DNA from: Oopsacas minuta
Lineage: Eukaryota; Animalia; Porifera
Reading direction: 5' to 3'
DNA length: 64,000 nt
NCBI GenBank assembly: GCA_024704765.1
Contig: JAKMXF010000177.1
Coordinates: forward strand, 434,001-498,000
Position numbers and translations under genes: made by a program
In this document: positions 1 to 46,377 of the stretch, in pieces
How the letters are laid out: the number at the start of each line of letters is the position of its first letter
Position numbering within the stretch: position 1 is the first letter of the stretch
The notes under the pieces: generated by a model
The model's database searches: none
Told to the model about the DNA's origin: nothing
The model's input: only the letters and a program-made list of their open reading frames with translations

Positions 1-3000
1 ACATTAACAACCCCAGCTTCTAGAGAGGCAAGTAATACTTGTTGGAGTGGGAGGAATGCAATTGAGTGAACTATGGAATTGTTTAGCTTAGGAATTGGCC
101 ATTTATTAGTAGGATTCCATGAATCTTGTCTCTGAAACAGAGTTACAGCCATGTCATTGTAGCTGGAACAGATAACTGCTGAATCAGTGAGAGCCTCAAT
201 AGAGTCTGTCTGATTTCTACAGCTGATAGTCTGGTACAGCTGATGACCTTTCGGTGAGAATATCTTCAGTGTGTTGTCAGAACTAGCAATGAACAGGTGA
301 TTCTGATGTAGTAGCATAGAGGAGATGTCTGTATCAGATACAGACCACTGACCTAGTATAAAACCCATCCGTGTGTCTATCATTATAATACCTCCACTAG
401 AAGTTGCTAAGTAGATGGTATGGTTATCCGTTGTCACGTTGATGTGATGGAATGTGGATGGTATTGACGGTGGGACTACCCAGTCAAACGCCAGTCGGGG
501 AACTCTTGTATCAAGAACAGTGAGTGTGCTCTCATTGGTAGCACTGTATATAACTCGTTGTGTCTGAGGGCTGTTACAATGAATTTGATATACTTTGGAA
601 GGATGTGCGTGTTTGTATGAAGTGTACATTGATTCTATATTCCATATGTGAATACAGCCGTCGTTAGAAACAACACTATCTAAAGAATTAAGGTAGGAGA
701 GAGACCTAATCTGCTTGGTATGACTCTTATAAACTCCATTAGCGTTAACATCTGATTGCAGGGTTGAGTCACACACTCTCCAGACCAACACCTGGTCTCT
801 AGATGATCCAAATATAACATTCTCACAGGGGGTGTGACACAGTTTGCTGATACTAGTCTCAAACCCATGCAATGATTGTACGTGATTAAATACAATTGGC
901 TCACTGTTGGTGTTTTCTATGGTTTGTTTGAGGTACTCAATCCAGTTACATTTGGTATGATAGCTGTGCTGAGAGGTTGAGGGTAGACTGGAGAAGAGAG
1001 AGGGAGTTGGCTTCGGATCTGGTCTGATTCTCTCCTCTGTATAAATAGGATGAGAAGAAAATGAACTGATATCTGTACGGCTACTGATGTTACTACTGTA
1101 GAAGAGAGAAACTAACTCTGTAAGCTCTCTTCTATATGCGAATACTTGCTTTATCTTCTTAACAGTAGGTGTGACTGGTGGAGCAAATGAAGGAATGTCT
1201 ATGTCATTATCCTGGAGGAATATATAAATAGAAGAAGAGAATTGTGAGAGCAAATCCGCATTGAACGTAGCCAGCAGTTGTGTATTAATCTTGTGTTGGT
1301 TGTCAGAAACATTTTCTCTTACAATATCAGCCTCACGAATAATCTGAATAGCAGAGAAGGCGTGGAATATCTTTTTGACAGCTGTCTTGACAGGTGACAC
1401 ATTGTGTGAAAAGAGCTTGGGACCGTTAGAGATCAGCTGGGTCATCAGCTGTAGCAAGGCTATATGCAGGTGATATCTGAACTCTTGACCTCTGGTGAAG
1501 AATGTTGAAGTTGAAGATATAACTTGATATACAACATCTACTATTTCTTTGAGGAACTGATAGAGAGTTTGCTGAATAGTGTCATTCGTCACTGACAACA
1601 GCCATATACTAGCTAATGTTAGAATAGCAGAGAGAAATCCTTCAGTCCTAATGTTTAGGATTCTCTTCTGCATATGAGATATCCAGGAGGTGACGTAGTG
1701 GAAACAGAGGAAAGTAGCGTATTTGTCGTTTGTGAGTGTCAGAATAGAATGAATGGTAACATAACATGTGTCGTGTAGGAATACGTTATGAAACATATCA
1801 AAAGATGTAATATGAGTGAATATCTTACATGAATAGTCTGGTAGAAGAGCAATCAGCTCGCTAAATAAGAATCTGGTAGAAATAGGTATCCCGAAGTAGC
1901 TGAAGAGGAACAGAAGAGTCTCAGAAGCTATGAGAGAGGAAGCAGAGTTGTTGAGGAGATCAACAACTTCTGTGTCTGACTCTTCCATGTGGATGGAGGG
2001 TCTCTCAAGGTGCTTGTAAGGAGCTGCTTCCGTCTGTTTGTGCAGCTGAGTTAGACAATCGGAGAGGAGAGAAATAGATACGGGAGAGGAACAATAGGAT
2101 GAAGTAATTGCTTTCAGAAGATACTTCAGCAAAACTGAGAAATAGTAGTTAGGACCGAACATGTTAATGAGAGATGTCACAAAAGAACTTTTGAACAGAC
2201 AAGGATATAAAGTGTGATCTTTCATGTCACAATACACCCTCTGTACACAACTAATATAGTTGTTGTGTAGATAACTGGTGGGTAGATAGCTAGCTATTAC
2301 TGAGAACACCTCTATGAAGCCTAGTGGAGCTAGAAGGGAGTCTGTGAATACCCACTTACAGTAATCTCCCACCAAATGCAGCCCTTCCTGAGGTATCCTA
2401 CACAGCAACTCAACAGACTCAGATCGTAGCAGATTCAAGATAGGGAAGTAGTCACTAGCTCGGAAGCACTTACGAGCTTCTAAGTGAGAGAGTGAGAAGA
2501 GCTTGTTCTTGAATGAGTATAGCCGAGAGAGGAATACGTGTAGAGGTTCGAAGTAGGAAGGAAACACTAATGGGAACTCAATAGTAACACAGTTCTGCAG
2601 AGAACTATTCTTTATGTATCTGTCCAGTAGAGGTAATAATAACTTTACCTCAGGTATATCTTGTAAAAGATCTTCTCTAAGATTAGCTCTAAGTAAGGTA
2701 GCTCTCTCACTAAGAGAAGCAGTAAAAGGATAGGATTTCAACTGATCGCTGGCTGTAAACTCAATAAACACAATTATCAATACAATCTGTGTGTACTCTG
2801 AACTATGAGATGCAAGGTACAAAAGGTCATGTCCATTTCTCTTAGAGAACTGAGTTTCACTACATTGCTGCTTGGCAGGAGACTGGTCGGAGTAGAACAG
2901 ATTTTCCTCTTCAAATTCATTCAACAATCTGCCTAAGTCCAAATTACTAGGAAGTGAAATGTGGCTGCGATACTTCAACACTTGAGTTTCATCAAGAACG

Positions 3001-4970
3001 TCTTTTCCTCTGAACCGACCAGTAAACGGAAAATGTTTCAGCTTTGTGGTCTCGAAGTCAGAAAAGCCGCGTTTTGTCTCTCCAGGCTTCCTGATAAGAG
3101 GCTCCGTTAAGTCAGCTGGAGGGGCCTGCACAACGTCGAAATGATCTATGTGACAGGACCCGTACAGACCCTGTTCATTAGGATCAGAGTCTACCCCGAT
3201 AATGTTATCAGCGACTGTATTTATGTTATCCTGCTCAATGGATATGATAGAGGATCTGTTAATCCCGCTCTCTAACTCATTATTGGTATTAACCTCCTTT
3301 TCTGATGACAGCTTAGTTTCTCTACCTGTGTAGTATTGGTGTAGATAGTTGGAGATTTGTTTCCTGGGGTGTGGCTCTTTGAATAGCTGATTTACTCCGT
3401 AGTTGTAGGGAGAGCTGTGCTTCTTGATTAGGAAATGAGGAATGTTCTTAGCCTTCAATCCCGCCTCGCCTGTCAATTTATAACCGAAGTACAAATCTAT
3501 CCAATTGTGTAGATTGCTAGACACGTGGTCACTCTCCAGAACACCCCTATGCCAGGCGATAAAGTTCTCAGGAGATTCACACCAATCCGGCACCTTCAGA
3601 TCCGGGAGGTCTGGATGGATGGAGTAGAATACAGAGGGGTCTGAGAAGAATTCAGGAATGCATTCGTCTGGAGTCCATTCCTGTATACGGGCCACATTGG
3701 TTGGGTACTCAGACGGCTCCCAGCGAGGCCTAACATATCTACACAGGACGGAGCGAGGAGTGCGTCTAGCAAGGTAGATAAAGTAAGTAATCTCTGAGAA
3801 TGTATCAGTAACGTGATGAGGCTCTAGCTTAGTTTCTGCTATAGTAGAGCTGTAGGTTGGAGAGGTGTAGGTGAAATCTAGCTGAGCATCTCCCTTGGTG
3901 AGACGATATTTGCTCTTAGTGAAATCTCTCGAAACAACGTCAGGAGATTTAAAGTCAGATACCCACGGTAGAAACGGGTGGTTGTTAGGATCTCCTTTCT
4001 TCCTACCAGCTGCTTCGTTAATCAGCAGCAAATAATTTAGGTTAGAGAGTTTGTTGTCTTGCCAGAGACGAGTGCTTTCCTGGAGCATGCTAGCTCTGCT
4101 GTTGAGTATCTCATCTATCTTTTCATCTTCTACGAGACTAATTGGAAGAGGAGGTGTTACTCCAGTGCTGAATAACCAGAGATTGGGATCTATGTAGAAA
4201 CTAGTAAGATTGAGGGAATTCGAGTCAGTTAGCGAATCACTAAGATCTTCAATACAATGTTTGAGTTGGTAGAGTAAGAAAAGACTTTTGATACGAGAAG
4301 AAAAGAGGAGGGGATTAGAGTACTTAACAGCATCTAGCAGAGTTACTTTAGTGTGTGGATGAATGAAATAGAAATGATCTTCAGTCTCCAGAATAAAATA
4401 AGTTGGTAGGAGATGAGAGGGAAATGAAGGTGAGGTTTGTAAGGACGGTGTATCTTGAGGCAAATCATTAGTAGTTTGAGATGGAACTTGTATAACATTA
4501 CAAGCGAAATAACCCTCTAAGAATTTGCTTTCTAACTTTGTGCTTTGAGAATATGACTTATCTGTGGTAGAAGAATAGCAACCTGACAATAGCTGTCTGT
4601 CTCTTAATTTTAAATTATTCTTGAGTTGAATTAAGTGTGTAAATATTGAGTTAGCACAATCTTGTGTAGTAGGATGAGATAATAACTGTTGCTTTCTCAA
4701 AACAGTAATTATAAAACTGTTCCAGCCCTGAGGCAAATTCGTGAGTATTGATGGCATTAGGAAAGATTTGATTGCTGTCTCATCCAGGTCTGATATGGGA
4801 GGAGTGCTGTACTTATTGGCCTCTCTAACCTGTGATATCCATCTGTTGTTGAGTAGACCATAACATATATTAGATGTATTTTCTTTATCAGAGATGTGTA
4901 GCTGTTTGAGAGGAATGTGAAGGTCCTTGGTAACGAGCGAGAGGACAGAAGGTAGGTCAGCCTGGTGCAT
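1..4970 (-). CDS. WDR81: WD repeat and BEACH domain protein WDR81; apparently single-exon, stop codon lies just outside the window
   Basis: ATG at 4970 (MHQADLPSVLSLVTKDL...). The same frame was confirmed at three sampled points: the N-terminus, about 3720 and the window edge. BEACH segment YLARRTPRSVLCRYVRPRWEPSEYPTNVARIQEWTPDECIPEFFSDPSVFYSIHPDLPDLKVPDW matches the WDR81 family signature as I recall it. The C-terminal WD40 end AFLPLQQVLLASLEAGVVNV reaches position 1. Probably missing from the ORF track because it has no stop in the window. Not every codon was checked. Confidence 0.92.
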   Translation of the reverse strand, partial: MHQADLPSVLSLVTKDLHIPLKQLHISDKENTSNICYGLLNNRWISQVREANKYSTPPISDLDETAIKSFLMPSILTNLPQGWNSFIITVLRKQQLLSHPTTQDCANSIFTHLIQLKNNLKLRDRQLLSGCYSSTTDKSYSQSTKLESKFLEGYFACNVIQVPSQTTNDLPQDTPSLQTSPSFPSHLLPTYFILETEDHFYFIHPHTKVTLLDAVKYSNPLLFSSRIKSLFLLYQLKHCIEDLSDSLTDSNSLNLTSFYIDPNLWLFSTGVTPPLPISLVEDEKIDEILNSRASMLQESTRLWQDNKLSNLNYLLLINEAAGRKKGDPNNHPFLPWVSDFKSPDVVSRDFTKSKYRLTKGDAQLDFTYTSPTYSSTIAETKLEPHHVTDTFSEITYFIYLARRTPRSVLCRYVRPRWEPSEYPTNVARIQEWTPDECIPEFFSDPSVFYSIHPDLPDLKVPDWCESPENFIAWHRGVLESDHVSSNLHNWIDLYFGYKLTGEAGLKAKNIPHFLIKKHSSPYNYGVNQLFKEPHPRKQISNYLHQYYTGRETKLSSEKEVNTNNELESGINRSSIISIEQDNINTVADNIIGVDSDPNEQGLYGSCHIDHFDVVQAPPADLTEPLIRKPGETKRGFSDFETTKLKHFPFTGRFRGKDVLDETQVLKYRSHISLPSNLDLGRLLNEFEEENLFYSDQSPAKQQCSETQFSKRNGHDLLYLASHSSEYTQIVLIIVFIEFTASDQLKSYPFTASLSERATLLRANLREDLLQDIPEVKLLLPLLDRYIKNSSLQNCVTIEFPLVFPSYFEPLHVFLSRLYSFKNKLFSLSHLEARKCFRASDYFPILNLLRSESVELLCRIPQEGLHLVGDYCKWVFTDSLLAPLGFIEVFSVIASYLPTSYLHNNYISCVQRVYCDMKDHTLYPCLFKSSFVTSLINMFGPNYYFSVLLKYLLKAITSSYCSSPVSISLLSDCLTQLHKQTEAAPYKHLERPSIHMEESDTEVVDLLNNSASSLIASETLLFLFSYFGIPISTRFLFSELIALLPDYSCKIFTHITSFDMFHNVFLHDTCYVTIHSILTLTNDKYATFLCFHYVTSWISHMQKRILNIRTEGFLSAILTLASIWLLSVTNDTIQQTLYQFLKEIVDVVYQVISSTSTFFTRGQEFRYHLHIALLQLMTQLISNGPKLFSHNVSPVKTAVKKIFHAFSAIQIIREADIVRENVSDNQHKINTQLLATFNADLLSQFSSSIYIFLQDNDIDIPSFAPPVTPTVKKIKQVFAYRRELTELVSLFYSSNISSRTDISSFSSHPIYTEERIRPDPKPTPSLFSSLPSTSQHSYHTKCNWIEYLKQTIENTNSEPIVFNHVQSLHGFETSISKLCHTPCENVIFGSSRDQVLVWRVCDSTLQSDVNANGVYKSHTKQIRSLSYLNSLDSVVSNDGCIHIWNIESMYTSYKHAHPSKVYQIHCNSPQTQRVIYSATNESTLTVLDTRVPRLAFDWVVPPSIPSTFHHINVTTDNHTIYLATSSGGIIMIDTRMGFILGQWSVSDTDISSMLLHQNHLFIASSDNTLKIFSPKGHQLYQTISCRNQTDSIEALTDSAVICSSYNDMAVTLFQRQDSWNPTNKWPIPKLNNSIVHSIAFLPLQQVLLASLEAGVVN

Positions 4971-17314: not shown

Positions 17315-20300
17315 TAGGCCGGATCGAGAAAAGTATAAATCGTCGGTTCAACTTCTACCTAAGGGAAAAGTTGCCTTTACCATTTTCTAGGAAAATGCGA
17401 GACTTAAATTTGAAAAATATTTCGATTTGACCCTTGCGGTTTTATATTTTTGCTGTGTCACTTTCGCAAAATTGATTTTATATTGTCCGAATTTTCAAAT
17501 TCCTTTGACTTAGCCCCTTTATATATATTATTTGGTAATAGTAAGTCGCATATTTGCTATTGAATGGTATATTAATCGAATTTCTATGTCCAAGGATACT
17601 CAAGTTATCAAGATTTTTTTTGCATATTCTATCATACCCTAATATTATTACCCACCCCCCTTTTTTTCCGATTATTTGAAAATTATTAGCTTTTTTATCT
17701 ATCGTGGTATATGATTCAATTATGTTATATCAAGTATATTTAACATGCATAATCTTTCTTTGACTCAAATGCGGGCATTTTTTCTCTTGATGTTAGGGTT
17801 GAAAGAATTAATCCATGCCTCGCATCTTCTCCTGTTACTGAACACGAACTTTTAGTGACTAATTGAATAGTTCTTTCAACAGCTTGTGTATGACATGGAT
17901 ATGCTGGAATTTCTAGTGGAGTACGTACACAATTAATTAGTACTTCTTTTGAGAGGTATCTTGTAAAAGGCGGTTCTGTGATAAAAGAGGTTTCCCAATC
18001 AATCATATCCACATATGTTTCAGCAGTGAACCTAATTGAAGGAAGATTAAATGGGCGAATTTCAATCGGTCTAAATGATGAACTGTTAATTCGGATATCT
18101 AAAATAGTCTTCACTGCCTTTTGTCTAATTTGTTCATCATTATCTGCAAGCATCGATAACAGGAGATTTTCTGGATGACAAAAATATGAGTTTCTCTGTA
18201 TCACATCGCAAATTACTTCTTGGTCAGACTCCGGTAGATCTCGTAGCAAAGATATCGCAAAAAACATATTTTTAGGTCCATCTGTGCAAATCGGGTTACT
18301 CTTGATTCTAAACCAAACTGGTGCATAATAATTGACAATAAAATTGACAAGTCGGGATAATTCAGGTGTGGGATGTATCGTAGAAATGTACGACCTAAGT
18401 AATCTGTTGGCCAGTGTTGTCCATCTAGCATGATTAAAGGACCAGGTTGCATCGATGCCAGTTCAGATGAGCAAATACCAGTCTGAACTGCATGGCAGAT
18501 ATTATATAGATATTTCTGATCTTTATTTAAATTCTTGAGAATATCGCAATCAATAAGTTGAGTTTTACCGCATAAAGGATGATACGCTGCAATTGGTTTG
18601 CAAGTAAAATCACAATTAAGTTCTTTACCAATTACTCCTTTAAAAGAATTGGGTCCACTGGTTTTTCCATCTATTATTTGAAAGAGATGCCTCAATGGAA
18701 GTTCATTACCATGTAATTGGCAAATAAACCAGTGGAGTGGTTTTGTGAACTCTAGTTCAAGTAATCTAATACACCCATTGTAGATTCCAGTGTTAACACG
18801 AGCTCCATCAGCTCCAACCGCCATTAAATTTGAATTACGCTCCCTGCAAAGATCAGTCAATTCCTTTGCTATATCTTTGGCTTTACCAGAACTTGGTGTT
18901 ATATGGGCAACATACTGATTCCCCGGTTCAGATAAGACAGTATAATGTTCTTCATTTGCAGTATCCTGATGCAAATGTCCATCTTCTCTTTCTACCAGTA
19001 CTCGAGTTTGATCTTTACGGCCATCAAAATATATTGCAGATATATCATTGATAGTTTCGTGAGCCTCATTAGCCAATTCCTTTCTCACAGAGAATCTAGA
19101 TCTACGGAGTTTGTTTCTATCAATAATTTGACTATCTTCTTCCTGTGTGATAATACCGTAATCCTGCAGTACTGCGTTAGCTATAGCTGCGCCTGCCCGA
19201 TCGCTAATTTGATATCTATCACACATTATGGCTAAATTTCGTAATTGATTATGATTACGTGTATACTTGTGAGTATTAGATGTACTCGAGTCAAAAGATT
19301 CAAACTCTTCAAAGTCACATTCTATAAATTCCTGCGAAGGTTGAACTGCATGTAATCTCTTCATTTCCCTTTCTTCTCTTTCATATTGTGCCTCTTTTCT
19401 TTTTTGTTTAACAAAATTTTTAGAGGTTGTCATGCAATCCAAGCTGGATATAAATAATTTTCGAGCGTTTCGCTGATCAAAGAGAAATGGCCACTCACGG
19501 CGTGGTATCTTTTTATCGAGAGAGCAAAAACATTTACCTTCCTGAATTAGGCATTTGCAACTTGAGACATCGAACAAGACATTGAATTCGGAAATAATAG
19601 GCTGTATACGGTCAGGTTGTTGCTTGTTTTGGATACTTTTTCCGTAGTATTTAGCTCTCTCAATAATATCAGAATTGATGTACTGTTTTATTTTGAGCTC
19701 TGATATAGTGGGTATGGAAGCCAAATTATAGATACGCACTAATACTTCAGTTAGTTCTTTCGCTATATCATCTCTAGTTGATTTAGAATCTTCATTTCTA
19801 AGCATTCTATAATGATTGTATAGATCTAGTTTTGTTGGAAGTTGATTTTCTGGAATGGGTCCTGGATAGCCAAAAATAGGATGAAATACTTTACTACGCG
19901 TGTTTTCTGCCATTTCAAAAATAAATATATTTTAGGAATATAATCACTCAATAATATGAATGATTTGATCGAGCATTGATATAGATACTATAATTGACCA
20001 TAAATTCCATGCTAGATAAATGGTAACTAAGTTAGAACAAGAGATAAGGAATGTTGGTAAAATTTCTTTGTGGTAACCTATTGATGAATTTGGATCTGAT
20101 AAAGAAATATACTAAGTTTGGTGATTATATAAAAATTTTACTAAGAATATAGAATTTTCAAATAATCGGAAAAAAAGGGGGGTGGGTAATAATATTAGGG
20201 TATGATAGAATATGCAAAAAATTCTTGATAACTTGAGTATCCTTGGACATAGAAATTCGATTAATATACCATTCAATAGCAAATATGCGACTTACTATTA

Positions 20301-32542: not shown

Positions 32543-34370
32543 TTAGAAATAAGTCTTCTCAAACTCCCATTGTTCGTTTGGTGATAGAGAGTCACAATAT
32601 TCTATTATTAGAGCTTGATCACTGTTCTGTGATAAACAATTTCCTGAAATCTGATGCTTAATAAGACCTGAAATTTGGTTAAACTCAAATAGCTGGTTCC
32701 CTCCCTGTCCGTGACAATTGTATAGAGTAACATGGGTACCAGGTTTGTAGTCAGACACGTCTAAACATGTGTCGTCATCCCAGATTAACTCATTCTTATC
32801 TGTATATAGGAAGTATTGGTTAGGAGCATCTAGTTTACAATTATGCATCTTAACATCTCCACTAGTTCTGCCTTCAGAATCAATACACAGTGATGTTCCT
32901 CGATTTTTGATTGGTCCAATTGCAGGAACGTTCTTGCCAGGAACCAGCATTTCTGTAGCAATGTTATTGAGGTACCAGTCAAATGATTTACACTCTAGTC
33001 TCTCTTTAAGAGCCAGTCGTTCTGAAATATCTCCATAAGGTAAATTTCTGTTGTATGGTCTCCTCTTGAAGTATTCCTCTTTGTACTCCCCCATCCACAC
33101 GTTGATGGTCCTGAGAACATTCTTAGTGATGGTCTCAGAGGATCCCTGAGGAAAGGAGTAAGAGGAATGTCTCTCTCGGAAGATATGAGCTACACGAGAA
33201 CAAGGAAGAATCTCTAGTTTCCCGCCACACATCCATATACGAAAGGACATCTCAATGTTCTCAGCTCCCCATATCTCCATCCCTTCGTCGTAGCCCCCTA
33301 TGTCAAAGAAGTACTTCCTTCTGATAGCGAACAGTCCTCCTGCCATCGCCTCGCTGCGGATAGCATCGGTCGGTGAGGTACGTAGTGCTTTAGACTCTTG
33401 ACTCAGTCCTCTCCATCTAATAATAACATTTATAAGAGCAAACTGCTGTGTATGTTATTACTATAGAAATGAACCTGAAGTCCATACTCCAAGAGAAGCT
33501 GCCCTGTAGCTCTAGAGTACCGGGGGTACCTACTAGCTCCATAGTCTCCCAAGAGATGATATCTATGACAGGACACACTATAGTAGAGGGATAATCTGCT
33601 ATTCTCTTCAGGAGAGGCTCTAACCAACCTTCCATACATTCTATGTGAGAGTCCAGGAACACAATAACATCTCCTGTAGCCTCGCTAGCTCCTGTCAGCC
33701 TAGCACGCATTAATCCTCTCCGTGAGGAATGACGTAATAGCTTGACAGAAGGGAAATACTTGTTGAGAGTAGAAGTGAGGTTAGCCAGCTCTCCAGTTGG
33801 ATCATCACTAGCATCATCTACTAGGATAATCTCTCTCAATAGATCTGATGGTGTGGTACGAGTTATGCTTGTCAGAGACCGCATAAGTACAGAGAATGCT
33901 TCGTTGACGAATATAATCACAATAGAAGCAACACCTAGCTCTGAGTGGGGAGGGATAGGCTGAGACAAACATTGGGAATCACGAAAATCAGAGAGGGGTC
34001 GGTACCAAGGCAGACGATCGCTTTTATATTTGTTGAATCCGTATCTGTCTAGTCCGGTCTTGTATTCAGTCTTCTCTTCGTCTGTTATTGGTTCTATGTT
34101 TGAGCTGTGAGGGGAATCAGGCGGTAAAATGAAGGGGCGGAGAGGATCAGGTAGAATATCTCGAAGAGACTCTTTCTCAGACAGAGACATTCCTTTGAAG
34201 GTAGACCGTATAAGTAGAATACTTGTATATATTATGGAAATAAGTAGTGCACACAAGAAGATCAACATAGTCAAAACAAGCAGCATCCAAATACGCTTCT
34301 TGCGACCCCGACACAGATAGTGTAGTCCTCCTAGCACTCCTCTCATCTTAAATAATTTGCCAGCTCTCAT
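32543..34370 (-). CDS. GALNT: Polypeptide N-acetylgalactosaminyltransferase, 2 exons (34370-33475, 33416-32543), about 589 aa
   Basis: N-terminal TM anchor; SIVIIFVNE, IILVDDAS, GLMRARLTGA, DxH motif FLDSH, WLEPLL and MAGGLFAI, WGAENIEMSFRIWMCGG, and a ricin-type lectin domain with QxW-like repeats. A 58-bp GT-AG intron joins DFR to WRGL. The paralog cannot be assigned. Confidence 0.95.
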
Positions 34371-36687: not shown

Positions 36688-38423
36688 TTACGTAATATAT
36701 AATGTCTTAGACTAGATAAGAAATTCCAATAAATTAGCCATTCATAATTGCAGAGAATTGGTAATTATTAATAATACAAAATGGATAAACTATTAAATGA
36801 ATGATAATATCATCCATAGCATAGGGTCACTAATTAGTAATTAGCTTTTAATCAATTCTGTATTCTAAAGAAATATAAACTACCTTTATAACTTGATTGT
36901 AACTAGAATGGAGTGGCTATAATTGTCAAGGTGCATACGATTATAAAGTCATATTAAGGGGGCAATAAGGGACACCTCTAGTGCCTCTAAATGTAATCAC
37001 CTATCATTGGTTGTCCCCAGGTTCCACATTCCGGGAAATTATTGAGAATGTATGGAGGAATTCGATAAGAATTTCCACGCGTGTGGTTTGACATCTAGAC
37101 ATAACATAACAAAAGTAAATAACTAAACATCCTTTTGTCCCTAGTAACCACAAAGATCTACTAAGACGTGTGGAAAATATGTGTGTAATGGCCAAGGGTG
37201 TGGAAAATTTGATAAATCCTCGAATCAAATCCCACCTTTGACCAATATAGGCCCAGATATACCAAATTGTGGTGTTTTAATTATCGGATATTTGTCCTCA
37301 AAAAAACATATAAATTGTAAAGAAAACAGGTATTTGGCTGCAAATACCTTTGGATTATTTTGTTTATCAGATATTGTTGTCTTCATTTCTCGTATAAAGA
37401 AATCGAATAAAAACAATTCAGGAAGTATAGAAGATAATTACAGTAATTTCATAATTCTTCGTTATAGTAGAGCTGTTAAACAATAAAGTATGCATTTTTG
37501 ATAGTAACCGAATATATCCAGATATTCAGTAAATTAACGAGGAAACAAACTAAAATTTCAATGTTTGAGCCTTAGGGCTGCCAGAAATACAATATTAAAT
37601 AGAAATTTCCAAAGTATACGTAGAGATCAAGGATAAATACAAAATATCAATCTCCCGATATCCGGTTATCCGATTATCGGTTTATCTCTGATAAAGAGTT
37701 AAATTATCCTGGGTCAGCCAGGGTGTGGCTATACCACTGCTACTAGGCATATCAGCTATATTTAATAATTAATATGTGAAATATGCTACAGCACACATCA
37801 GGCCCTTATCTGAGCGCGCACCCAGGCGTCCGTGATTTTTGAAAAATATTTATGAATGATCAATATCAGGTGCTATCTCCATGTTCATAATATATTAGGG
37901 TGCGGGGGGTGCCTAACTCTAGATGAAGCCCTGTAACACACTGATAGCATCAGCCTTTAAAAATTCGTAGGATCGAGCGAGGCTAATACGAAAGTCGCAC
38001 ATAGTTAGTTATAGTTGGCACATTGCTATCATAGAACCTGAATTGAAAAAGATTTAAATTCCTTACCTTGTCAAATATCCTCAAAATATTTTCTACTTTA
38101 CATGACTATTAGGACAACTTTGATATAAGTACAATCAAATCCCCTTAATAGAGCCATCGGGTAATCATTCAGACAGGTCAAGATGTCTTGGTCCCGATGT
38201 AATGATCAGATGTGATCCTATTAAGCAAGATATACTGCATTTTGAATAAATATAATAGTTTAAGTAGTTTTAAAATAAATACAAAAATGCAAGAAATAAG
38301 TTCACAAAATAATTTAATAAAATTCTTTGAGGATGGATGTACAAAACCTCACCAATAAACAGGTATTATAAAAATACAGCTTAGACTAGCAAAGTATATT
38401 TAACACTTAGCTAAGTAACAAAC

Positions 38424-41400
38424 TCAGTTCATATTTTGATAAATAGTCTCTGATAATTTGAGAGAGATCTTCATAGCATTAGCAACAATAGTCTGTATCT
38501 GATGACTGTCATTGTTACACTTGACAGCATCTTTCAATTCTTCTTCATTATGATAGAGAGATAGTTCACAGAATTCTCTACCGACGCTAATATTTTGAGT
38601 GCAGTATTCTATTCCAGTAGTCAACTTAGCAATCGTGTTTTCAAATTGGTAGTACTCAACTTTACGGTAATTCTTAAGTAAGATTAATTTGTCTTTGAGA
38701 TGAGCAGTTAGGGTAGGGGATCCTTTCTTATCAACCGTAAGAATGGGGGAGTTAATTCCATCAGGAAAAATCATATCATAGAAGCCAGAATGTTTTTCTA
38801 AAGGTGTAGAACTCTCTGTACGTAGCCTGACATCGTGGGCCTTTGTAGGATCTAGTTTCTTTCTGTCAGCTACAATAGTTGCTAACATCCATACGAGAGG
38901 ACTCTCACTGACGTCAATCACCTGTAGCTGCTCATCTAGAATAATTCTGACAGATCGGTTTAAAGTTACTTGAATATTAACCATCCATGTAATGACTTGG
39001 CATCTATCTAATTGAACAAATTCACATTGCTGGATTGAATTCATAAATATAGATTTAGTTGACAGCTTATGTATGTCATTGGCTAGCTTAATCCCGGGAC
39101 AGAACCCGCAGCCTAGAGCTCTATTGGTGAGACCATGTGGGTCTTCTATCGGAGGAATAGAAGTGGGAGGATCTTCTTGTACTGGTTGAATGGGAGATGA
39201 TTGGATTTTCAAATCTTTTAAGTATTCGGCTAAAAGATTAATGTCCTCTTCAACAGAATCAAATTTGCGATTGTTTCTTCCTTTTAATAAACAGTTTTCG
39301 AAATCATTCAAGTTGATTGATGAGCCGATACTTTGGAAAGAATCAAAACCTTCAAGTACATAGAAGTAACCAAATCTTGTAATGAATTTAAGATTCTTGA
39401 GCATTTCTGCATTTTTCGCAGGAAAGTGTGAAAGTTGGTTACAGAGCAAAGATTGTATCTTAATTGTACCAGCAGTATTCCAATCGTTGTTAAAGGTGTT
39501 TTCGCCAGCTGAAACGAGAACATTCTTATTATTGCGGTAGTGATGTTCTCTGCAGAGTCCATGATCAAAAGTATTCAGCATAACTTTGGGATTAATGCAG
39601 TGGTTTGACATGATCAATGCCAGACTACCTTCAAGAATATAGTGACTGGTGGTTGACTTATAGCTTTTTGTCAGAGCAGTGTTTGACTCTAACTGTGATA
39701 CTTCATTTGAGAGCTTATGAATAGCTGCTGCAGTGCCATGTGCAGAGAGATGAATATACCTATCTCTCACGTCGATATGAATGAAAGCTCCGCTATTATT
39801 AGATAATATATTCTCGAAAAAATGAGTTGAAGTACGAAGGCTATTACTAAGTAAACTAGAAAATCTTTTATTAAACGACAATTCCAATTGAGACCGCTCG
39901 AATAACTTAGTGATATCTCTTGTGAACACGAGACAATGCCATGCCTGGAATAGTAGAACAGATATCCTACGGAGAGCTGACTCTCTAATGACATGTATAG
40001 GCTCACCTGCTATTGGCCACGTGTAGACTATTTCATGCACGTCATTAGAAGTAATCTTATATCCTAACCAGAAAAATTCTTCCAGCATTAGTCCTAACAT
40101 ATTATCTATAGAAGGTCTCCTAAGCAGTTCTAACATGGAGTAGAGCGAGCTATCAATTTCATTATTCACAACTTGATCTTGTTTACATTTCATTTTATTA
40201 TAAATATGCAAAACCAGAGCTTCAAATTGTGCTGTAATTACAACGCACGTGTTGTTTTCAGAATCACGACATTTTAAGATACCAGTGTGTCGTGCCCAGT
40301 GTATTAAAATCCATAAAAACCCAAAGAATACCCCTTCAGTCTTGCGGTATAATCCTAAGATATATTCAGCCTTCAACACTCCGTCGCTCTCAACAGTTAT
40401 ATCTACGCTAATTTCTGTGCATCTCTCATCTTGTGAGTCTACCTTACAGTTAAGAAATGGGAAACCCTCAAATTTCTCTGTTTTACAACTGGAAATATGT
40501 CCGAGGGGAGGGGAGATAAATGATTTCAAAAGATGTTTCCGTTTCTTAGCGATTTCTAATGTTTTGAATTTCTCTGATTGTGGAATTGAATCCATTCCAA
40601 ACTCGGTCAAGGTCACACAAACGTCTAAGTCTGATTGCAATTCACATAGGTATTTGGAAACAGATCCGTATGCTTCTATACGGAAAATATCTTCTACTTG
40701 ACAGGTCTCATCAGTTCTACAAGCATGGAAAGCGTATTTGTTGATAGCAGAATGGATCTTAGGTAGTAAATTAATCTTTCCCTCTACAACATTAACAATA
40801 TTATCACTATTTCTTGATATGTATTCCCGTGCAGACTTCCCTATCCCTGTATGAAGGTTATGTCCGATAGGGATTGGTTGTTGATATATGGATACAATCT
40901 CACACAGGTATTCTCCAACTAACCAAGGAAAAGAGAGGAAAATGATATCATTTGTTTGTTGTTGTTGATATTGGTAAGCTGTAATATACCATGCTGCTGC
41001 TTTACTCCGATAATCACTTCTTGTTGTCCCTCTATAAAACTTTTCCCTAAATTCTTCCGCTAAGCAGGTAGTAGCAGCTTCCAATGTTCTAATAATCTTG
41101 CTTTTATCTGCGATCAAGAGAGGGTGACACTTCAGCACTAAGCATAACACGACTTCTGCTTCTGTTTCAATGCCAAGAGATAGCATTATAGCTCTTATAG
41201 AATTTTGATATTCGAAATATCTAATACTGGCATCTTTCATGTAATCCTCATAGCCACGTATCTTGAACATATCAATTGCTATATTTCCAGGAGTTTTCTG
41301 ATTGAAATTACGCCCGCTATAATAACTGAGAAGACTCTCCCAACCATTTATGTCTCCGAAACAAACAGCACTAGCTTGTTGGTAGAATTCTCCTAGCAAT

Positions 41401-44400
41401 TTGCTTGACTTATAAGAAACATTCTCTGTCTTCTCCATGAAGTCTGGATACCCTTTCTCTCTAATTAATTGCTTGGCTTTTTCAGGAATAACTGGGAATA
41501 TATTAGTTTTAGGAGCATCTACAGCTAATGAAGCTAGCTTAGCTAGTTCTATTGAAAGATTGTCTCTAGCTCCATCAGGCTTCATATCGCTAATGGCTAC
41601 ATGGTAGTGGGATATGATCCCTAATAAGCTATTAGAAATAACATGGCAGTATGACTGCGCTAATATATCCTGGATGTCTGTAGTGTTTGCGTCTAACACA
41701 GTTATTTCTTTATTAACATTCTGTTGCGAATCTCCAACACTATCTGTGTATTCTTTCAGGACCTGATCGTAATTCAGTGAGGGAAATGTAGCAGTTTGGG
41801 GTGGGATTAAGTCTTCATCCCATATAATTGCAAACTCGTCTCCATCCAGATCCCCACCTCCACTACAAGCCGGAAGCGACGTAGTACCTTTGATAGGAAA
41901 CACGATTACATTGTGTAGATTATGGAGCTCCTCCTTGTCTACTGCTGTAGGCGTTAGCAAATCTCCTGGATGAAGACACGGGTTCTTATAAACAAGCATC
42001 CTTCCTGTTAATCTCCGTATGAGAAGTCTATCTGATGGACGTTCCTCATAGGTGATGTATACTTCTCCGTCTTCAAGCACTCCGATTGGATCAGGGATAC
42101 CCATCAAGATACAGCCGTTTTCCATTGGAATATGAAATCTTTTAGACAAATTATTAACATTGTGTGCATAGATACAACGTAATAATGATATGAAGTATGG
42201 TTCACAGAGAATATCGAAATATTTACTTGTTTCTTTAGGGTAATTATGTAAATGTGAGATTAATTGGCGATTAGCAGTATTTACATCAGTGAAGAGCATT
42301 GCGTTGTGTTCCAGCGCATGTGAGAATATCAGTTTTAATTTAGGTTTAGGGTCCCATTGTAGTTTACTCGAGTCTCTTAAACTTGTTAATAAAGTCAGCA
42401 TTTGTGTATTGAGGAATAACCTATTGTATTTACCAGCTTTAACAATACATAACATAGAATCAGTCCATTCTATTTTCTTCATAGATTCCCTATACATGAT
42501 ACTGTATTGTTTGTTAGTAGATTGTAAATCAGTATCTGTATCATCTACTATAGTTAATACGCCTTTGAGACCAGCTAGCCTGATCTGTATTGCAGAAGTG
42601 TTATCTGTAGTTGGATTGTTCTTTAGTTTTATAGCATCAAATATCTCAGCAGCTTTAGATTTAAGAATCTTACCATTCCCATCAGTTAAGTTTCCACCAT
42701 TAGTAGCAAACAAATCTTGTAACATTATAGTATCCTGCTCATTAATCTTACATACAGGATAATCTGTCGTACAAAATAAACCTAGTCTTGTGAGGTATTT
42801 AGTCTCATTCTTAATCTTAGAATTCCCAATCAGCTGATGCCTGATTTCCCTAATTCTATCAGAAACATTATCTGTACCTCTTATATTAATGAAAATAGCT
42901 TTCTTGCTTCTCAGCTGACTACCACTACAAACTAGAAAATAAAAACTAACTCCCTCGATTTCGATCCCAGATTTGAGTATCCGCTCAACTCTGTGAATGA
43001 CGTCAGAATTCTTAAGCGCTTCGCCATGCTCCTCACAGAATGCTAAATTCAGAAACCGTTCATTAGGAAACATCCTGTATAACCTGTTGCATTGCGCTAG
43101 GAAAGGTTGGATTGGAATAACTGTAGCTGGAGTCACCATTGCAGTTTCAATGAATCTGAAATTATTGGATAGAGACATACTAGTGTCAACATGAGTATGT
43201 ACTCTAATAGAATTCAATATATCATTAAAAGTATTGTATAGATCAAAGAAATAATAGGTAATACCAACTGATAATCGTGAGAGTAGCTGTGACAGAGTTA
43301 AGTTAATATCATCAATTTCCTTCACATTCGATTCGTGAATATCACACAATATCTTGCTGAATGTTTGCTGGGGTATACATATATCTCTACAAGATTTTAA
43401 CACATTTAATTTCCATAAGGTATCCTGCATTGGTTTATAATCCAAATATAAAGGATGAGTCATCAAGCATTGAACTGGTTCATAGGTATGTGTATCAATC
43501 TCGACACGTGACTCGAATACTGGAACAGGGAAGATTGCTAAAAAATGTAAAAATGTCCATAACCGACTCCAATTATATTTATCATACTTCAGTGTAATTC
43601 CAACTACAGGGGAATTAGCGAAATCTGTCAAATATACACATTCATCACATGACAATCTTTTACCACATTTAGTATGTATAGTTGGACAATGGATAAGAGG
43701 AATATATAAAGTAACATCATCCTTGGTCCAGTTAGCTAGAATAAACCGATGTATTGAGGTCAATGGTATCTCTATGACGATCAATTGAGGAGAAGTAGGT
43801 AGAGATATTTCAATACATCTTTCTTGAAACAATTCAAAGGTCCCATTTTCATCACACTTGTATGTTTTCATTAATTCAAAAATTTGTTTATCACGAAAAT
43901 TACCCCAAGAAATAGTCTGTAAAGGCCATTTTGAGTTGATTTGTTGTCCACTCTTCCTCGGTAAGATAATTCTAGTCCAGATACCAGTAGACACCTTATT
44001 GATAATGAATCCCCATTCCATGGTTAGTAATTTGTAACGTTGATAAATGTTAGGAGATAATGTCTGTAATCCCAAAACTAGTAAGGAATCTCCAGGAGGG
44101 AATATGTGTTTGGATTTCCACTTAGAATTGTTATCAGCTAGATCAATCAGTTTAACTTTCAAGAAGTATTTTGTAAATAGAAAATCTGCGATTCTATCTT
44201 GAAGTTTAAACAACTGGTGAGAACCAGTTAAATAAAATTCTACTACACATTCTGATGATTGAATGGAAGAATCAGTCTCACGAGGAGATCTTTCCTGTTT
44301 AATATCTGCTAATTTACTCAGTATTGTCTCTGTAGTAGCTGAGGGAATCTTATTATCATTATAACAATTGGTCAATACTTTTTTAACAAGTTTTTCATGA

Positions 44401-46244
44401 AGTTGTATCTCTTCTGTAAAGATTCTCTCATCTTCTGACATTATTATATAAAACTTACTCTCGGCCCATTTCCTAGCCCTTCCCTTACTCTGTGTGAATG
44501 AAATCAGAGATTTAACGCCATCAAATCGTATAACGACATCACAATCAGGATTATCAATACCCTCTTCGAGAACAGATGTGCTAACCAATAGGTGACAATT
44601 TCCATGTCTAAACTTGTCAATAATTCCATCTTGTTCATTCAGCCAATTCATACCGAATGGACCACTTTGTCCTACGATCTTCAGAGGAGAATACTTTTTG
44701 TTAATTGTTTGATCTTCTTTAAGAATGTTTGTCAGCATATGAGCCAGACGTCTGGTTTTGACAAATACTAATATTTTAGAACTTTTTGGTAATTCTGTGA
44801 GTATTGATAGAAGCTTTAACACCCGGGGAGACAATACTTTATCAGGTTTAAGGTCCTTGATTATGTCTAGGTTTTCTAGCATTTTGTGAGCATCTGTAAT
44901 TCCTAGCATTTCTGTAATCTCTAACACGTCACAGATTATCTTCATTGACTTAACATGTTGTTCTAGTAATATATCGTTATTCAATTCTAATTGATATAAC
45001 ATAGTGGATAATTGAATCCTGTTTTTGTTAAGTTTCCAATCTTCTTTAAAAATTAGTTCAACTTGAGAACGGTCATTAATTGCATCAGCTAGTCTGTACA
45101 ACTCTTTCTCTAGTTTTTCTAGATATTCACAAAGTGCCCAAACAGGCTTTTCAGTAATGATCTGTTTCTTTATCTTAGCGTCATCAATAGCATGTTTATC
45201 TAAAGATAGATTGTGACAGATAGGAGCATTGAAGAATACCTTCCTAAACTTGTCTAATAGCACTTTAGTATTCTCAGGATTACCTTTAGTAGAGGGAGGA
45301 GATGCAGTTAGACCCAATACCCTGGGACGAGGATTACAACCAGCGATCATTTCCAGCAAGATAACATAGTCATGAGATTTCGTAGCATGATGACACTCGT
45401 CAAATATCACCAAGCAGAATTTACTCACTCTAACCTCTCTCTCTAAAGCAAGGTAAGCACCAGCTGTTGATACTACGACATCGTAGAATCCTTGATTCAG
45501 TTGCATGCGTTTCAAGTTTGTATTGAATTCACTGGTGATAGGACAAGCTCTCAAGTGTGTGTCTGTGCTAATAGATTCTGCCTGCTGGAATACTAACGGA
45601 ATTCTGTCTACAATGAATAGCACCATCCTGGAAGGATTCAATGCCTTCATTCTAGCAGTAATGATACTAGCTACTAACGTTTTCCCGTAACCAGTGGGTA
45701 GAACTAATACAAGATCTCTCTGTAGAGCTTCTATATAAGCTGTGATCTGATAGTCCCTGGGTGTCACATCTGACATTATGATGTCATCATAATTGAAGTC
45801 TGATATATTTTCAGGGTTTGGCCAGTTGATGGAAACAGCTTTGGGGGTAGTTTTAGTTGGAACAGTCAAAATGTTAGTGAGTCCGGGGAAGCCATAAAAA
45901 TTATGAGGATACCGGATCTTTATTCCATTGTAAGGTGGGTTTGTATACAAATTGTGCCAGCGATCTTTCTTTTCTGATTTTTTCCCCAAGACAACTACTC
46001 CCTGGCCAAATGCCATTATGTCAGCGTGGTTAGGACCAAAGCAGTGCTTCGTGCCAATTTTAGAATTACAATATAAACATATTATAAAATATTGGCTGCG
46101 TTTATCGTTAATGAATTTAAACTTATCTTCGTAGAAAATAGACTCTTCGAATTTTATCATCAGTTCTACGAACTTATCTCGTTTTTGGAAGAAACACAGA
46201 TCATCAGCAGGGACCAAAGCTTTATGACAATGACCACAATTCAT
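38424..46244 (-). CDS. 2606-aa fusion: CxxC/CxxC Zn domain + Dicer/RIG-I-like DExH helicase + eukaryotic RNA-dependent RNA polymerase + Cid1/TUTase-like nucleotidyltransferase + unassigned C-terminus
   Basis: Helicase motifs: PTGYGKT (45678-45698), DECH (45390-45401), LTAS, VFVKTR, STSVLEEGID, QSKGRAR (44472-44492). RdRP motifs: SGSQLR, RLGLF, TDGNG, AIQIRLAGLKGVL, KNPCLHPGD, GGDLDGDEF (DLDGD 41838-41852), KAAAWY, LSFPW. Nucleotidyltransferase motifs: YGS (40662-40670), SDLD (40623-40631), VDIT (40401-40403), LIHWAR, LGLMLEEFF. Confidence 0.95.
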   Translation of the reverse strand: MNCGHCHKALVPADDLCFFQKRDKFVELMIKFEESIFYEDKFKFINDKRSQYFIICLYCNSKIGTKHCFGPNHADIMAFGQGVVVLGKKSEKKDRWHNLYTNPPYNGIKIRYPHNFYGFPGLTNILTVPTKTTPKAVSINWPNPENISDFNYDDIIMSDVTPRDYQITAYIEALQRDLVLVLPTGYGKTLVASIITARMKALNPSRMVLFIVDRIPLVFQQAESISTDTHLRACPITSEFNTNLKRMQLNQGFYDVVVSTAGAYLALEREVRVSKFCLVIFDECHHATKSHDYVILLEMIAGCNPRPRVLGLTASPPSTKGNPENTKVLLDKFRKVFFNAPICHNLSLDKHAIDDAKIKKQIITEKPVWALCEYLEKLEKELYRLADAINDRSQVELIFKEDWKLNKNRIQLSTMLYQLELNNDILLEQHVKSMKIICDVLEITEMLGITDAHKMLENLDIIKDLKPDKVLSPRVLKLLSILTELPKSSKILVFVKTRRLAHMLTNILKEDQTINKKYSPLKIVGQSGPFGMNWLNEQDGIIDKFRHGNCHLLVSTSVLEEGIDNPDCDVVIRFDGVKSLISFTQSKGRARKWAESKFYIIMSEDERIFTEEIQLHEKLVKKVLTNCYNDNKIPSATTETILSKLADIKQERSPRETDSSIQSSECVVEFYLTGSHQLFKLQDRIADFLFTKYFLKVKLIDLADNNSKWKSKHIFPPGDSLLVLGLQTLSPNIYQRYKLLTMEWGFIINKVSTGIWTRIILPRKSGQQINSKWPLQTISWGNFRDKQIFELMKTYKCDENGTFELFQERCIEISLPTSPQLIVIEIPLTSIHRFILANWTKDDVTLYIPLIHCPTIHTKCGKRLSCDECVYLTDFANSPVVGITLKYDKYNWSRLWTFLHFLAIFPVPVFESRVEIDTHTYEPVQCLMTHPLYLDYKPMQDTLWKLNVLKSCRDICIPQQTFSKILCDIHESNVKEIDDINLTLSQLLSRLSVGITYYFFDLYNTFNDILNSIRVHTHVDTSMSLSNNFRFIETAMVTPATVIPIQPFLAQCNRLYRMFPNERFLNLAFCEEHGEALKNSDVIHRVERILKSGIEIEGVSFYFLVCSGSQLRSKKAIFINIRGTDNVSDRIREIRHQLIGNSKIKNETKYLTRLGLFCTTDYPVCKINEQDTIMLQDLFATNGGNLTDGNGKILKSKAAEIFDAIKLKNNPTTDNTSAIQIRLAGLKGVLTIVDDTDTDLQSTNKQYSIMYRESMKKIEWTDSMLCIVKAGKYNRLFLNTQMLTLLTSLRDSSKLQWDPKPKLKLIFSHALEHNAMLFTDVNTANRQLISHLHNYPKETSKYFDILCEPYFISLLRCIYAHNVNNLSKRFHIPMENGCILMGIPDPIGVLEDGEVYITYEERPSDRLLIRRLTGRMLVYKNPCLHPGDLLTPTAVDKEELHNLHNVIVFPIKGTTSLPACSGGGDLDGDEFAIIWDEDLIPPQTATFPSLNYDQVLKEYTDSVGDSQQNVNKEITVLDANTTDIQDILAQSYCHVISNSLLGIISHYHVAISDMKPDGARDNLSIELAKLASLAVDAPKTNIFPVIPEKAKQLIREKGYPDFMEKTENVSYKSSKLLGEFYQQASAVCFGDINGWESLLSYYSGRNFNQKTPGNIAIDMFKIRGYEDYMKDASIRYFEYQNSIRAIMLSLGIETEAEVVLCLVLKCHPLLIADKSKIIRTLEAATTCLAEEFREKFYRGTTRSDYRSKAAAWYITAYQYQQQQTNDIIFLSFPWLVGEYLCEIVSIYQQPIPIGHNLHTGIGKSAREYISRNSDNIVNVVEGKINLLPKIHSAINKYAFHACRTDETCQVEDIFRIEAYGSVSKYLCELQSDLDVCVTLTEFGMDSIPQSEKFKTLEIAKKRKHLLKSFISPPLGHISSCKTEKFEGFPFLNCKVDSQDERCTEISVDITVESDGVLKAEYILGLYRKTEGVFFGFLWILIHWARHTGILKCRDSENNTCVVITAQFEALVLHIYNKMKCKQDQVVNNEIDSSLYSMLELLRRPSIDNMLGLMLEEFFWLGYKITSNDVHEIVYTWPIAGEPIHVIRESALRRISVLLFQAWHCLVFTRDITKLFERSQLELSFNKRFSSLLSNSLRTSTHFFENILSNNSGAFIHIDVRDRYIHLSAHGTAAAIHKLSNEVSQLESNTALTKSYKSTTSHYILEGSLALIMSNHCINPKVMLNTFDHGLCREHHYRNNKNVLVSAGENTFNNDWNTAGTIKIQSLLCNQLSHFPAKNAEMLKNLKFITRFGYFYVLEGFDSFQSIGSSINLNDFENCLLKGRNNRKFDSVEEDINLLAEYLKDLKIQSSPIQPVQEDPPTSIPPIEDPHGLTNRALGCGFCPGIKLANDIHKLSTKSIFMNSIQQCEFVQLDRCQVITWMVNIQVTLNRSVRIILDEQLQVIDVSESPLVWMLATIVADRKKLDPTKAHDVRLRTESSTPLEKHSGFYDMIFPDGINSPILTVDKKGSPTLTAHLKDKLILLKNYRKVEYYQFENTIAKLTTGIEYCTQNISVGREFCELSLYHNEEELKDAVKCNNDSHQIQTIVANAMKISLKLSETIYQNMN

Positions 46245-46377
46245 CGGAATAAGCTAGTGAGATAATTCATTGGTAAATGCATGTAAGTGAAAAGTGAGAA
46301 ATTACTGTATTTCGCTTTTAGTATATACTAGCAGAGGTATTGAAAGTCGAGTGCGGACTAGACTTTTCACTATATGA

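Follow-up and report, generated by a model that had tools for sequence, protein, structure and literature searches.

A 64,000-nucleotide stretch of the sponge Oopsacas minuta genome (assembly GCA_024704765.1, contig JAKMXF010000177.1, positions 434,001 to 498,000; hereafter the window, numbered from its first letter) carries on its minus strand, at 38424-46244, an open reading frame (ORF) that runs from ATG to stop over 2606 codons with zero internal stops. We consider it quite probable that this ORF functions as a nuclear gene in the family of helicase-bearing cellular RNA-dependent RNA polymerases (RdRPs), and that it encodes a single-chain counterpart to the RNA-directed RNA polymerase complexes (RDRCs) of other organisms, with a C-terminal tunnel that holds a 5'-triphosphate. 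Judged by homology and domain order, the family is that of the Dictyostelium Rrp proteins and of the cnidarian and oomycete helicase-RDRs. The chain was divided as follows, with model confidence given as the predicted local distance difference test (pLDDT).

38424..46244, minus strand: complete single-exon ORF, 2606 codons plus stop; about 30 full-length homologues align with it from M1 onward
45900..46244, minus strand: N-terminal four-cysteine zinc domain, residues 1-115 (C3, C6, C56, C59); conserved cysteines, model pLDDT ~80-90
44325..45779, minus strand: superfamily 2 (SF2) helicase of the RIG-I-like receptor (RLR)/Dicer type with Hel2i insertion, residues 156-640; Pfam, PDB profile and fold
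43155..44282, minus strand: conserved beta-rich middle region, residues 655-1030; family conservation, confidently modelled
40905..43136, minus strand: cellular RdRP catalytic and head domains, residues 1037-1780; PF05183, and PF26253 RdRP_head in precomputed annotation
39873..40898, minus strand: Cid1/GLD-2-type non-canonical poly(A)/(U) polymerase module, residues 1783-2124; G1860, S1861, D1872, D1874, D1948, K1958, and fold
39645..39872, minus strand: small beta-alpha-beta-beta-alpha domain, residues 2125-2200, RRM-like as in canonical poly(A) polymerase; secondary structure
38427..39635, minus strand: triphosphate-tunnel (TTM)-like domain, residues 2204-2606, nearest RESC1/RESC2; fold matches

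A Dicer-type helicase and a cellular RdRP in one chain

A sequence-only reading of this DNA had described a single uninterrupted ORF with intact Dicer/RIG-I-type SF2 helicase motifs, a cellular RdRP with catalytic DLDGD and a pol-beta-fold nucleotidyltransferase, lacking RNase III and PAZ motifs. Every item of that description was borne out; the list was incomplete in that the N-terminal zinc domain and the C-terminal RESC/Cet1-like tunnel had been missed.

The helicase was recognised by Pfam (ResIII/DEAD at residues 161-318, Helicase_C at 479-590), and its motifs I PTGYGKT (183-189), II DECHH (282-286) and VI QSKGRAR (585-591) do not vary across the family alignment. When a profile of the N-terminal 1040 residues was compared with PDB sequences, a reconstructed ancestral Dicer helicase ranked best with an E value of 1.6e-78, followed by DCL1, LGP2, Dicer, MDA5 and RIG-I. 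The fold agrees, as residues 160-632 of an AlphaFold2 model (pLDDT 81) align to RIG-I, LGP2 and MDA5 with a Z of about 31, including the Hel2i insertion that separates the two RecA domains. A Pfam scan of all 2606 residues at E up to 0.1 gave neither RNase III nor PAZ, which sets the protein apart from Dicer. The scan gave no CARD match either, and the sole four-cysteine zinc domain lies N-terminal and not C-terminal to the helicase, so that the protein does not class as an RLR. This zinc domain is probably Yippee/Mis18/MsrB/RLR-C-terminal-domain-like, kinship to the RLR C-terminal domain being weakly supported; among PDB sequences its profile picked up MsrB and the Yippee-like domain of Mis18, both below significance at E 0.2-0.9. 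The profile of the middle region yielded zero PDB sequence matches.

The polymerase is covered by a full-length match to PF05183 at residues 1037-1623 (E 2.1e-113, profile positions 1-581 of 582), and at least 30 of 32 family members keep its catalytic DLDGD, at 1465-1469. With a Dicer-like helicase N-terminal to the RdRP in one chain, and with homology to named members, the protein is a helicase-RDR of the Dictyostelium Rrp type. The matches in Hydra, Hydractinia, Heterostelium and Plasmopara carry the same domain order.

Earlier work has reported such fusions from Dictyostelium, Peronosporomycete oomycetes, Hydra and Nematostella, and has placed them in the RDR-gamma group (PMC4791657), in agreement with the Dictyostelium precedent that the sequence-only reading had cited. 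The sponge protein resembles Dictyostelium RrpA/B/C, the Peronosporomycete RDR and the Hydra and Nematostella RDRs in its N-terminal Dicer-like helicase and cellular RdRP in one chain. These two accounts, however, give two functional domains (the Dictyostelium rrp genes are described with "both functional domains"; PMC3950715), whereas the sponge, Hydra, Hydractinia and dinoflagellate proteins add a transferase, an RRM-like domain and a tunnel after the RdRP. The paper on the oomycete helicase-RDRs never mentions a nucleotidyltransferase (PMC4791657), and a full-text literature search returned no paper that ties helicase-RdRPs to a transferase domain or a triphosphate tunnel, although a prior description in a comparative-genomics review is possible. 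PF22600 is listed on several homologues in public domain tables, so the transferase is visible there. Relative to the literature found, the helicase-RdRP fusion is already known, and the transferase and tunnel modules are undescribed.

The nucleotidyltransferase and the RRM-like domain

In the window protein itself, the Pfam match for the transferase is PF22600 (MTPAP-like palm) at residues 1854-1966, scoring 19.1 bits against a cutoff of 27 (E 1.4e-3). The same family scores above the cutoff, at 29.5-51.7 bits, in homologues from Hydra, Effrenium, Riccia, Convolutriloba, Oopsacas, Montipora and Heterostelium. Among 46 representatives, each from a separate 50%-identity cluster, G1860, S1861, S1871, D1872, D1874, D1948, G1955 and K1958 are invariant in all 46, and the family alignment keeps the pattern FGS...C...SDLD...(V/I)D...SDG..K. 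We modelled residues 1780-2606 with AlphaFold2 (pLDDT 79); model residues 4-345 align to CutA, Cid1, GLD-2, URT1, TUT1/4/7 and trypanosome TUTases with Z 19-20. These matches span 260-280 residues, both in re-aligned Foldseek matches and in a Foldseek-independent search. Matches of the transferase profile to PDB sequences were sub-significant, within the E range of 0.16-0.9 seen for the transferase, tunnel and zinc profiles; such matches are in line with the fold comparisons but are no proof by themselves.

Because homologues exceed the Pfam cutoff, the fold matches reach Z 19-20 and the GS...DxD...D...K residues are invariant, the presence of Cid1/GLD-2-type catalytic and central (PAP-associated) domains with intact catalytic residues is confirmed at the level of sequence and modelled structure, and residues 1783-2124, directly after the RdRP, are predicted to fold as the pol-beta nucleotidyltransferase that had been proposed. 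Compared with Cid1, TUT4/7, GLD-2 and CutA, the catalytic and central domains superpose over ~260-280 residues with GS, DxD, third Asp and Lys all present; the sponge module differs in being fused behind an RdRP and shares 11-16% identity with them. Fold matches to the yeast and bovine canonical poly(A) polymerases extend further, to model residues ~387-400, and so cover the RRM-like unit.

A C-terminal tunnel resembling RESC1/RESC2

Over the tunnel part the model has pLDDT values mostly of 80-95 and shows the antiparallel beta-barrel tunnel fold. The best structural matches of residues 2204-2606 are trypanosome RESC1/RESC2, with Z 21-23 over ~280 residues at a root-mean-square deviation of 3.2-3.6 Å, followed by yeast Cet1 (Z 17.3, 227 residues) and S. 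pombe Pct1 (Z 15.1). At the sequence level the signal is faint: mimivirus RNA triphosphatase ranks first among PDB sequences at a sub-significant E of 0.25, Pfam matched nothing meaningful in this region in any of the 26 family members, and an ESM Atlas feature search with residues 2195-2606 gave scores of ~0.55 to unrelated families only and was uninformative.

Motif A of Cet1 carries the signature ExExK. In the sponge domain the candidate motif A strand reads KFITRFG (consensus KxKxRFG) and the candidate motif C strand DVRLRTE (DxRxRxE), both assigned approximately, by alignment ranges. The charged tunnel residues conserved family-wide are mostly basic (R2326, R/K2448, R2473, K/R2475, R/K2519 and R2524, with R2290 counted too), and the conserved acidic ones are few (D2437, E2447, D2471 and E/D2560). 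The tunnel therefore seems, from its sequence, to be without Cet1's metal-binding glutamates. As with the Cet1, Pct1 and mimivirus RNA triphosphatases of the TTM superfamily, an eight-strand tunnel fold is predicted (Z 15-17 for Cet1/Pct1), with [KR]FG on the first tunnel strand; in contrast to them, the catalytic glutamates are apparently replaced, an N-terminal extension is held in common with RESC, and nothing indicates a capping role.

RESC1/2 have a Cet1-type tunnel fold without two of the three metal-binding glutamates, and RESC2 binds the guide RNA 5'-triphosphate while being catalytically inactive (PMC10201420). The sponge domain has the tunnel fold in common with RESC1/RESC2 and apparently, as they do, lacks the full Cet1 metal site; RESC1/RESC2 are stand-alone mitochondrial proteins forming a domain-swapped heterodimer, and the likeness is one of fold. 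Given the apparent replacement of the glutamates, the conserved Arg/Lys set and the likeness to RESC2, the tunnel most likely binds a 5'-triphosphate end instead of hydrolysing it.

The tunnel module may also exist as a stand-alone protein. Proteins of ~410-520 residues from protist transcriptomes and metagenomes (P0083, P0109, P0120) match the tunnel alone, some with the RRM-like part as well, at E 1e-20 to 1e-42, and one of them carries a complete-ORF label. In a fold comparison with AlphaFold DB clusters (Foldseek E 1e-6 to 1e-11), the RRM-like and tunnel pair also matched fungal DUF7905 and DUF7903 proteins, an SLS1-type protein, an RRG9-named protein and a 1058-residue entry with a poly(A)-polymerase palm domain.

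The architecture is spread across eukaryotes

A profile of the C-terminal part retrieved 233 representatives among 1.84 billion proteins, 153 of them at E up to 1e-10. With hidden Markov models built from the sponge family, the full seven-module order (zinc domain, helicase, middle region, RdRP, transferase, RRM-like domain, tunnel) was found in many proteins of 2300-2900 residues. The lineages are as follows.

Oopsacas minuta, sponge: two paralogues
Hydra vulgaris and Hydractinia, cnidarians: full module order
Montipora, coral (cnidarian): helicase, RdRP and PF22600 transferase detected
Convolutriloba, acoel: full module order
Effrenium and Prorocentrum/Polarella, dinoflagellates: full module order
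Symbiodinium, dinoflagellate: partial record that stops inside the RdRP
Diplonema, diplonemid: zinc domain, helicase, RdRP, transferase and tunnel detected
Sulcionema, diplonemid: tunnel not detected
Riccia, liverwort: zinc domain, helicase, RdRP, transferase and tunnel detected
Bryopsis, green alga: tunnel not detected
Zopfochytrium, chytrid: partial helicase, RdRP and tunnel only
Plasmopara, oomycete: C-terminal matches weak
Heterostelium, dictyostelid: helicase, RdRP and PF22600 (45.6 bits); tunnel profile against the C-terminus, hhalign E 0.056

Among published helicase-RDR lineages, the tunnel is accordingly not demonstrable in the dictyostelid and weak in the oomycetes. The sequence-only reading had inferred a Rosetta-stone fusion. 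The fusion is neither new nor confined to animals, since Hydra, Hydractinia, an acoel, dinoflagellates, diplonemids and a liverwort all have full-length relatives; partial or more divergent ones, with helicase, RdRP and some or all of the C-terminal modules, are present in a green alga, oomycetes and a dictyostelid. The architecture is that of an old family across eukaryotes, neither a sponge nor an animal invention.

In a first search, the best named matches outside sponges came from Symbiodiniaceae and were 28-29% identical along the whole protein. A quick maximum-likelihood tree places the sponge clade as sister to a clade holding Hydra and the acoel (SH-aLRT 80), apart from the dinoflagellates. 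On this grouping, vertical descent within animals followed by many losses is favoured. The sponge clade itself contains several deep paralogue groups, every one of them single-ORF.

Locus, selection and transcription

The gene is carried on a 760-kb contig among ordinary animal genes, and the G+C content of the ORF matches that of its flanks, with no shift across the gene. The flanking ORFs are animal-type genes with introns (a GalNAc-transferase with ricin lectin domain, protein kinases, an MFS transporter and a ZER1-like protein), unlike the RdRP gene, which is intron-free. A 70%-identical protein (P0002) is encoded by a single ORF in another assembly, where GalNAc-transferase and kinase genes adjoin it too, and this locus is the syntenic orthologue of the one in the window. 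Relative to that orthologue, the ratio of nonsynonymous to synonymous substitution rates (dN/dS) is 0.08-0.22 per module where computable, values that are rough as dS is saturated; the NG86 method gave no dS for the transferase and RRM-like parts and saturated values elsewhere. Purifying selection is thereby shown, from the aligned sequences, on each module with a computable ratio. Pseudogene and mis-assembly readings of the gene were rejected.

In four sequencing runs of one sample, 95-98% of the sampled sequence words of the ORF were present, the figure for run X4 being 95% over the whole ORF. Three of the four runs had flat, DNA-like depth over gene and flank. In X4, depth was 360-740 throughout 38401-43600 with no splice joints, 119 at 38201-38400 and 2-8 at 37601-38200, a fall of more than 100-fold beyond the stop codon. 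X4 looks like RNA, with an unspliced transcript whose 3' end lies ~100-200 nucleotides past the stop codon. One further feature follows from this profile.

38250..38423, minus strand: probable short AT-rich 3' untranslated region, end approximate; X4 depth falls from ~650 through 119 to 2-8 between 38400 and 38200, with ATTAAA near 38317

At position 38474 (codon 2591), runs X1, X3 and X4 read C at full depth against T in the window, and X2 has zero depth there; this is probably an assembly or haplotype difference.

Proposed mechanism and alternative readings

The S. pombe RDRC consists of Rdp1, the helicase Hrr1 and Cid12, that of Tetrahymena of Rdr1 and Rdn transferases, and in C. elegans RdRP goes together with DRH-3 and with RDE-3/CDE-1. 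Cid12, the Rdn proteins, RDE-3 and CDE-1 tail 3' ends in trans. Helicase, RdRP and Cid1-family transferase are common to the RDRCs and the sponge protein, so the comparison drawn in the sequence-only reading is apt, with three activities in one conserved polypeptide. The RDRC activities reside in separate subunits, in contrast to the one chain of the sponge; the zinc domain and the triphosphate tunnel are extra in the sponge protein, and Hrr1 is not a helicase of the RLR/Dicer type.

We propose that the helicase, perhaps with the zinc domain, would engage an RNA or RNA end and translocate in an ATP-driven manner, and that the RdRP would start copies of the engaged RNA de novo, which would leave a 5'-triphosphate on each product. 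The transferase may add untemplated nucleotides at the 3' end of template or product, and the C-terminal tunnel may hold the 5'-triphosphate end in the way that RESC2 holds that of guide RNAs. Such a protein could serve to amplify small interfering RNAs (siRNAs), or it could act in an antiviral response that double-stranded RNA induces. We know of no established function for cellular RdRPs of non-bilaterian animals. The interpretation in the sequence-only reading is partly supported: all catalytic motifs of the three enzymes are intact, but the label "silencing amplifier" is conjecture. Nematostella RdRPs are induced by the viral mimic poly(I:C) with no secondary siRNAs detected, the helicase-bearing members not being specified (PMC12768352).

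Several points weigh against the proposal of a single-chain RDRC counterpart. The Nematostella result is one of them, and family function is backed by the genetics of Dictyostelium Rrp only. The structures are AlphaFold2 models (pLDDT 79 and 81), the loss of the glutamates rests on alignment ranges and the [KR]FG motif, and the transferase match of the window protein itself is under the curated Pfam cutoff. As to transcription, the run type of X4 was guessed, its depth profile covers 38401-43600, and contigs cannot prove one full-length molecule.

It is possible, though less likely than not, that the protein is chiefly an innate-immune sensor and effector for foreign RNA and not an RNAi amplifier: helicase, zinc domain and tunnel would recognise viral 5'-triphosphates or double-stranded RNA, and polymerase and transferase would mark or convert the RNA. 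The helicase is equally close to RIG-I, LGP2, MDA5 and Dicer, the zinc domain shows the four-cysteine pattern of the RLR-C-terminal-domain/Yippee fold, the poly(I:C) response in Nematostella came without detectable secondary siRNAs (PMC12768352), and several paralogues per sponge genome are of a kind common in immune gene families. However, CARD or other signalling domains are lacking, the strict conservation of the RdRP and transferase catalytic sites argues that RNA synthesis is the core activity, and a family member, RrpC of Dictyostelium, is required for siRNA spreading (PMC3950715). We regard it as unlikely that the tunnel is an active RNA 5'-triphosphatase trimming the triphosphate ends of RdRP products, as a built-in counterpart of nematode PIR-1. 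The fold matches to Cet1 (Z 17.3) and Pct1 (Z 15.1), the first rank of the mimivirus triphosphatase among PDB sequences (E 0.25) and the remaining conserved acids D2437, E2447, D2471 and E/D2560 would fit such an enzyme. Yet the strand expected to read ExExK reads KFITRFG (KxKxRFG) and that matching Cet1 motif C reads DxRxRxE, both by approximate assignment, and the inactive RESC1/2 pair is the best structural match (PMC10201420).

That the gene is foreign to its host, whether by contamination, recent transfer from a dinoflagellate symbiont or as cargo of a mobile element or virus, is very improbable. The Symbiodiniaceae matches of the first search, the lack of introns beside intron-bearing neighbours and MULE/FLYWCH transposase ORFs upstream in the orthologous locus would speak for it; against it stand the 760-kb contig of ordinary animal genes, the synteny with GalNAc-transferase and kinase genes kept in a species at 70% identity, the matching G+C and the placement of the sponge clade with Hydra and acoel. 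Contamination and mobile-element cargo were rejected on these grounds. A broader and rather doubtful extension of the single-chain reading is that the ancestral eukaryotic RdRP machine was one chain that unwound, copied and tailed RNA while its tunnel clamped the 5'-triphosphate of the new strand, with the RDRCs as later break-ups and RESC1/RESC2 derived from the tunnel; the diplonemids, sister group of the kinetoplastids, still carry the fused protein. If so, the yeast, ciliate and nematode RDRC subunits and kinetoplastid RESC1/RESC2 would share one fused source.

With the single-chain RDRC counterpart as the preferred reading, one conserved chain that joins helicase, polymerase, tailing enzyme and a likely 5'-triphosphate tunnel yields specific predictions, testable by mutation, on the coupling between template choice, 3' tailing and treatment of the 5' end, and a complete RDRC-like reaction could be reconstituted from it as one recombinant protein. 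For the RESC1/RESC2 fold, otherwise an orphan, the tunnel is a first candidate relative. What counts is the more complete domain map, the sponge locus itself being one more member of a widespread family.

Neighbouring features

At 32543-34370 on the minus strand, the polypeptide GalNAc-transferase is split over at least two ORFs (a GT2 domain, then Glyco_transf_7C with the ricin lectin domain), and such a gene also adjoins the orthologous RdRP gene in the related assembly (locus L001, 16526-18362). The FLYWCH and MULE transposase ORFs lie at 1621-3612 of that locus, just upstream of the RdRP gene, and the corresponding stretch of the window is without any long ORF. A 566-residue ORF at 18213-19913 (minus strand) had no Pfam match at E up to 0.01. 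Immediately upstream of the RdRP gene, at 46241-46282 on the minus strand, a 13-codon ORF begins with an ATG at 46282-46280, and its TGA overlaps the main start codon (ATGA, 46244-46241).

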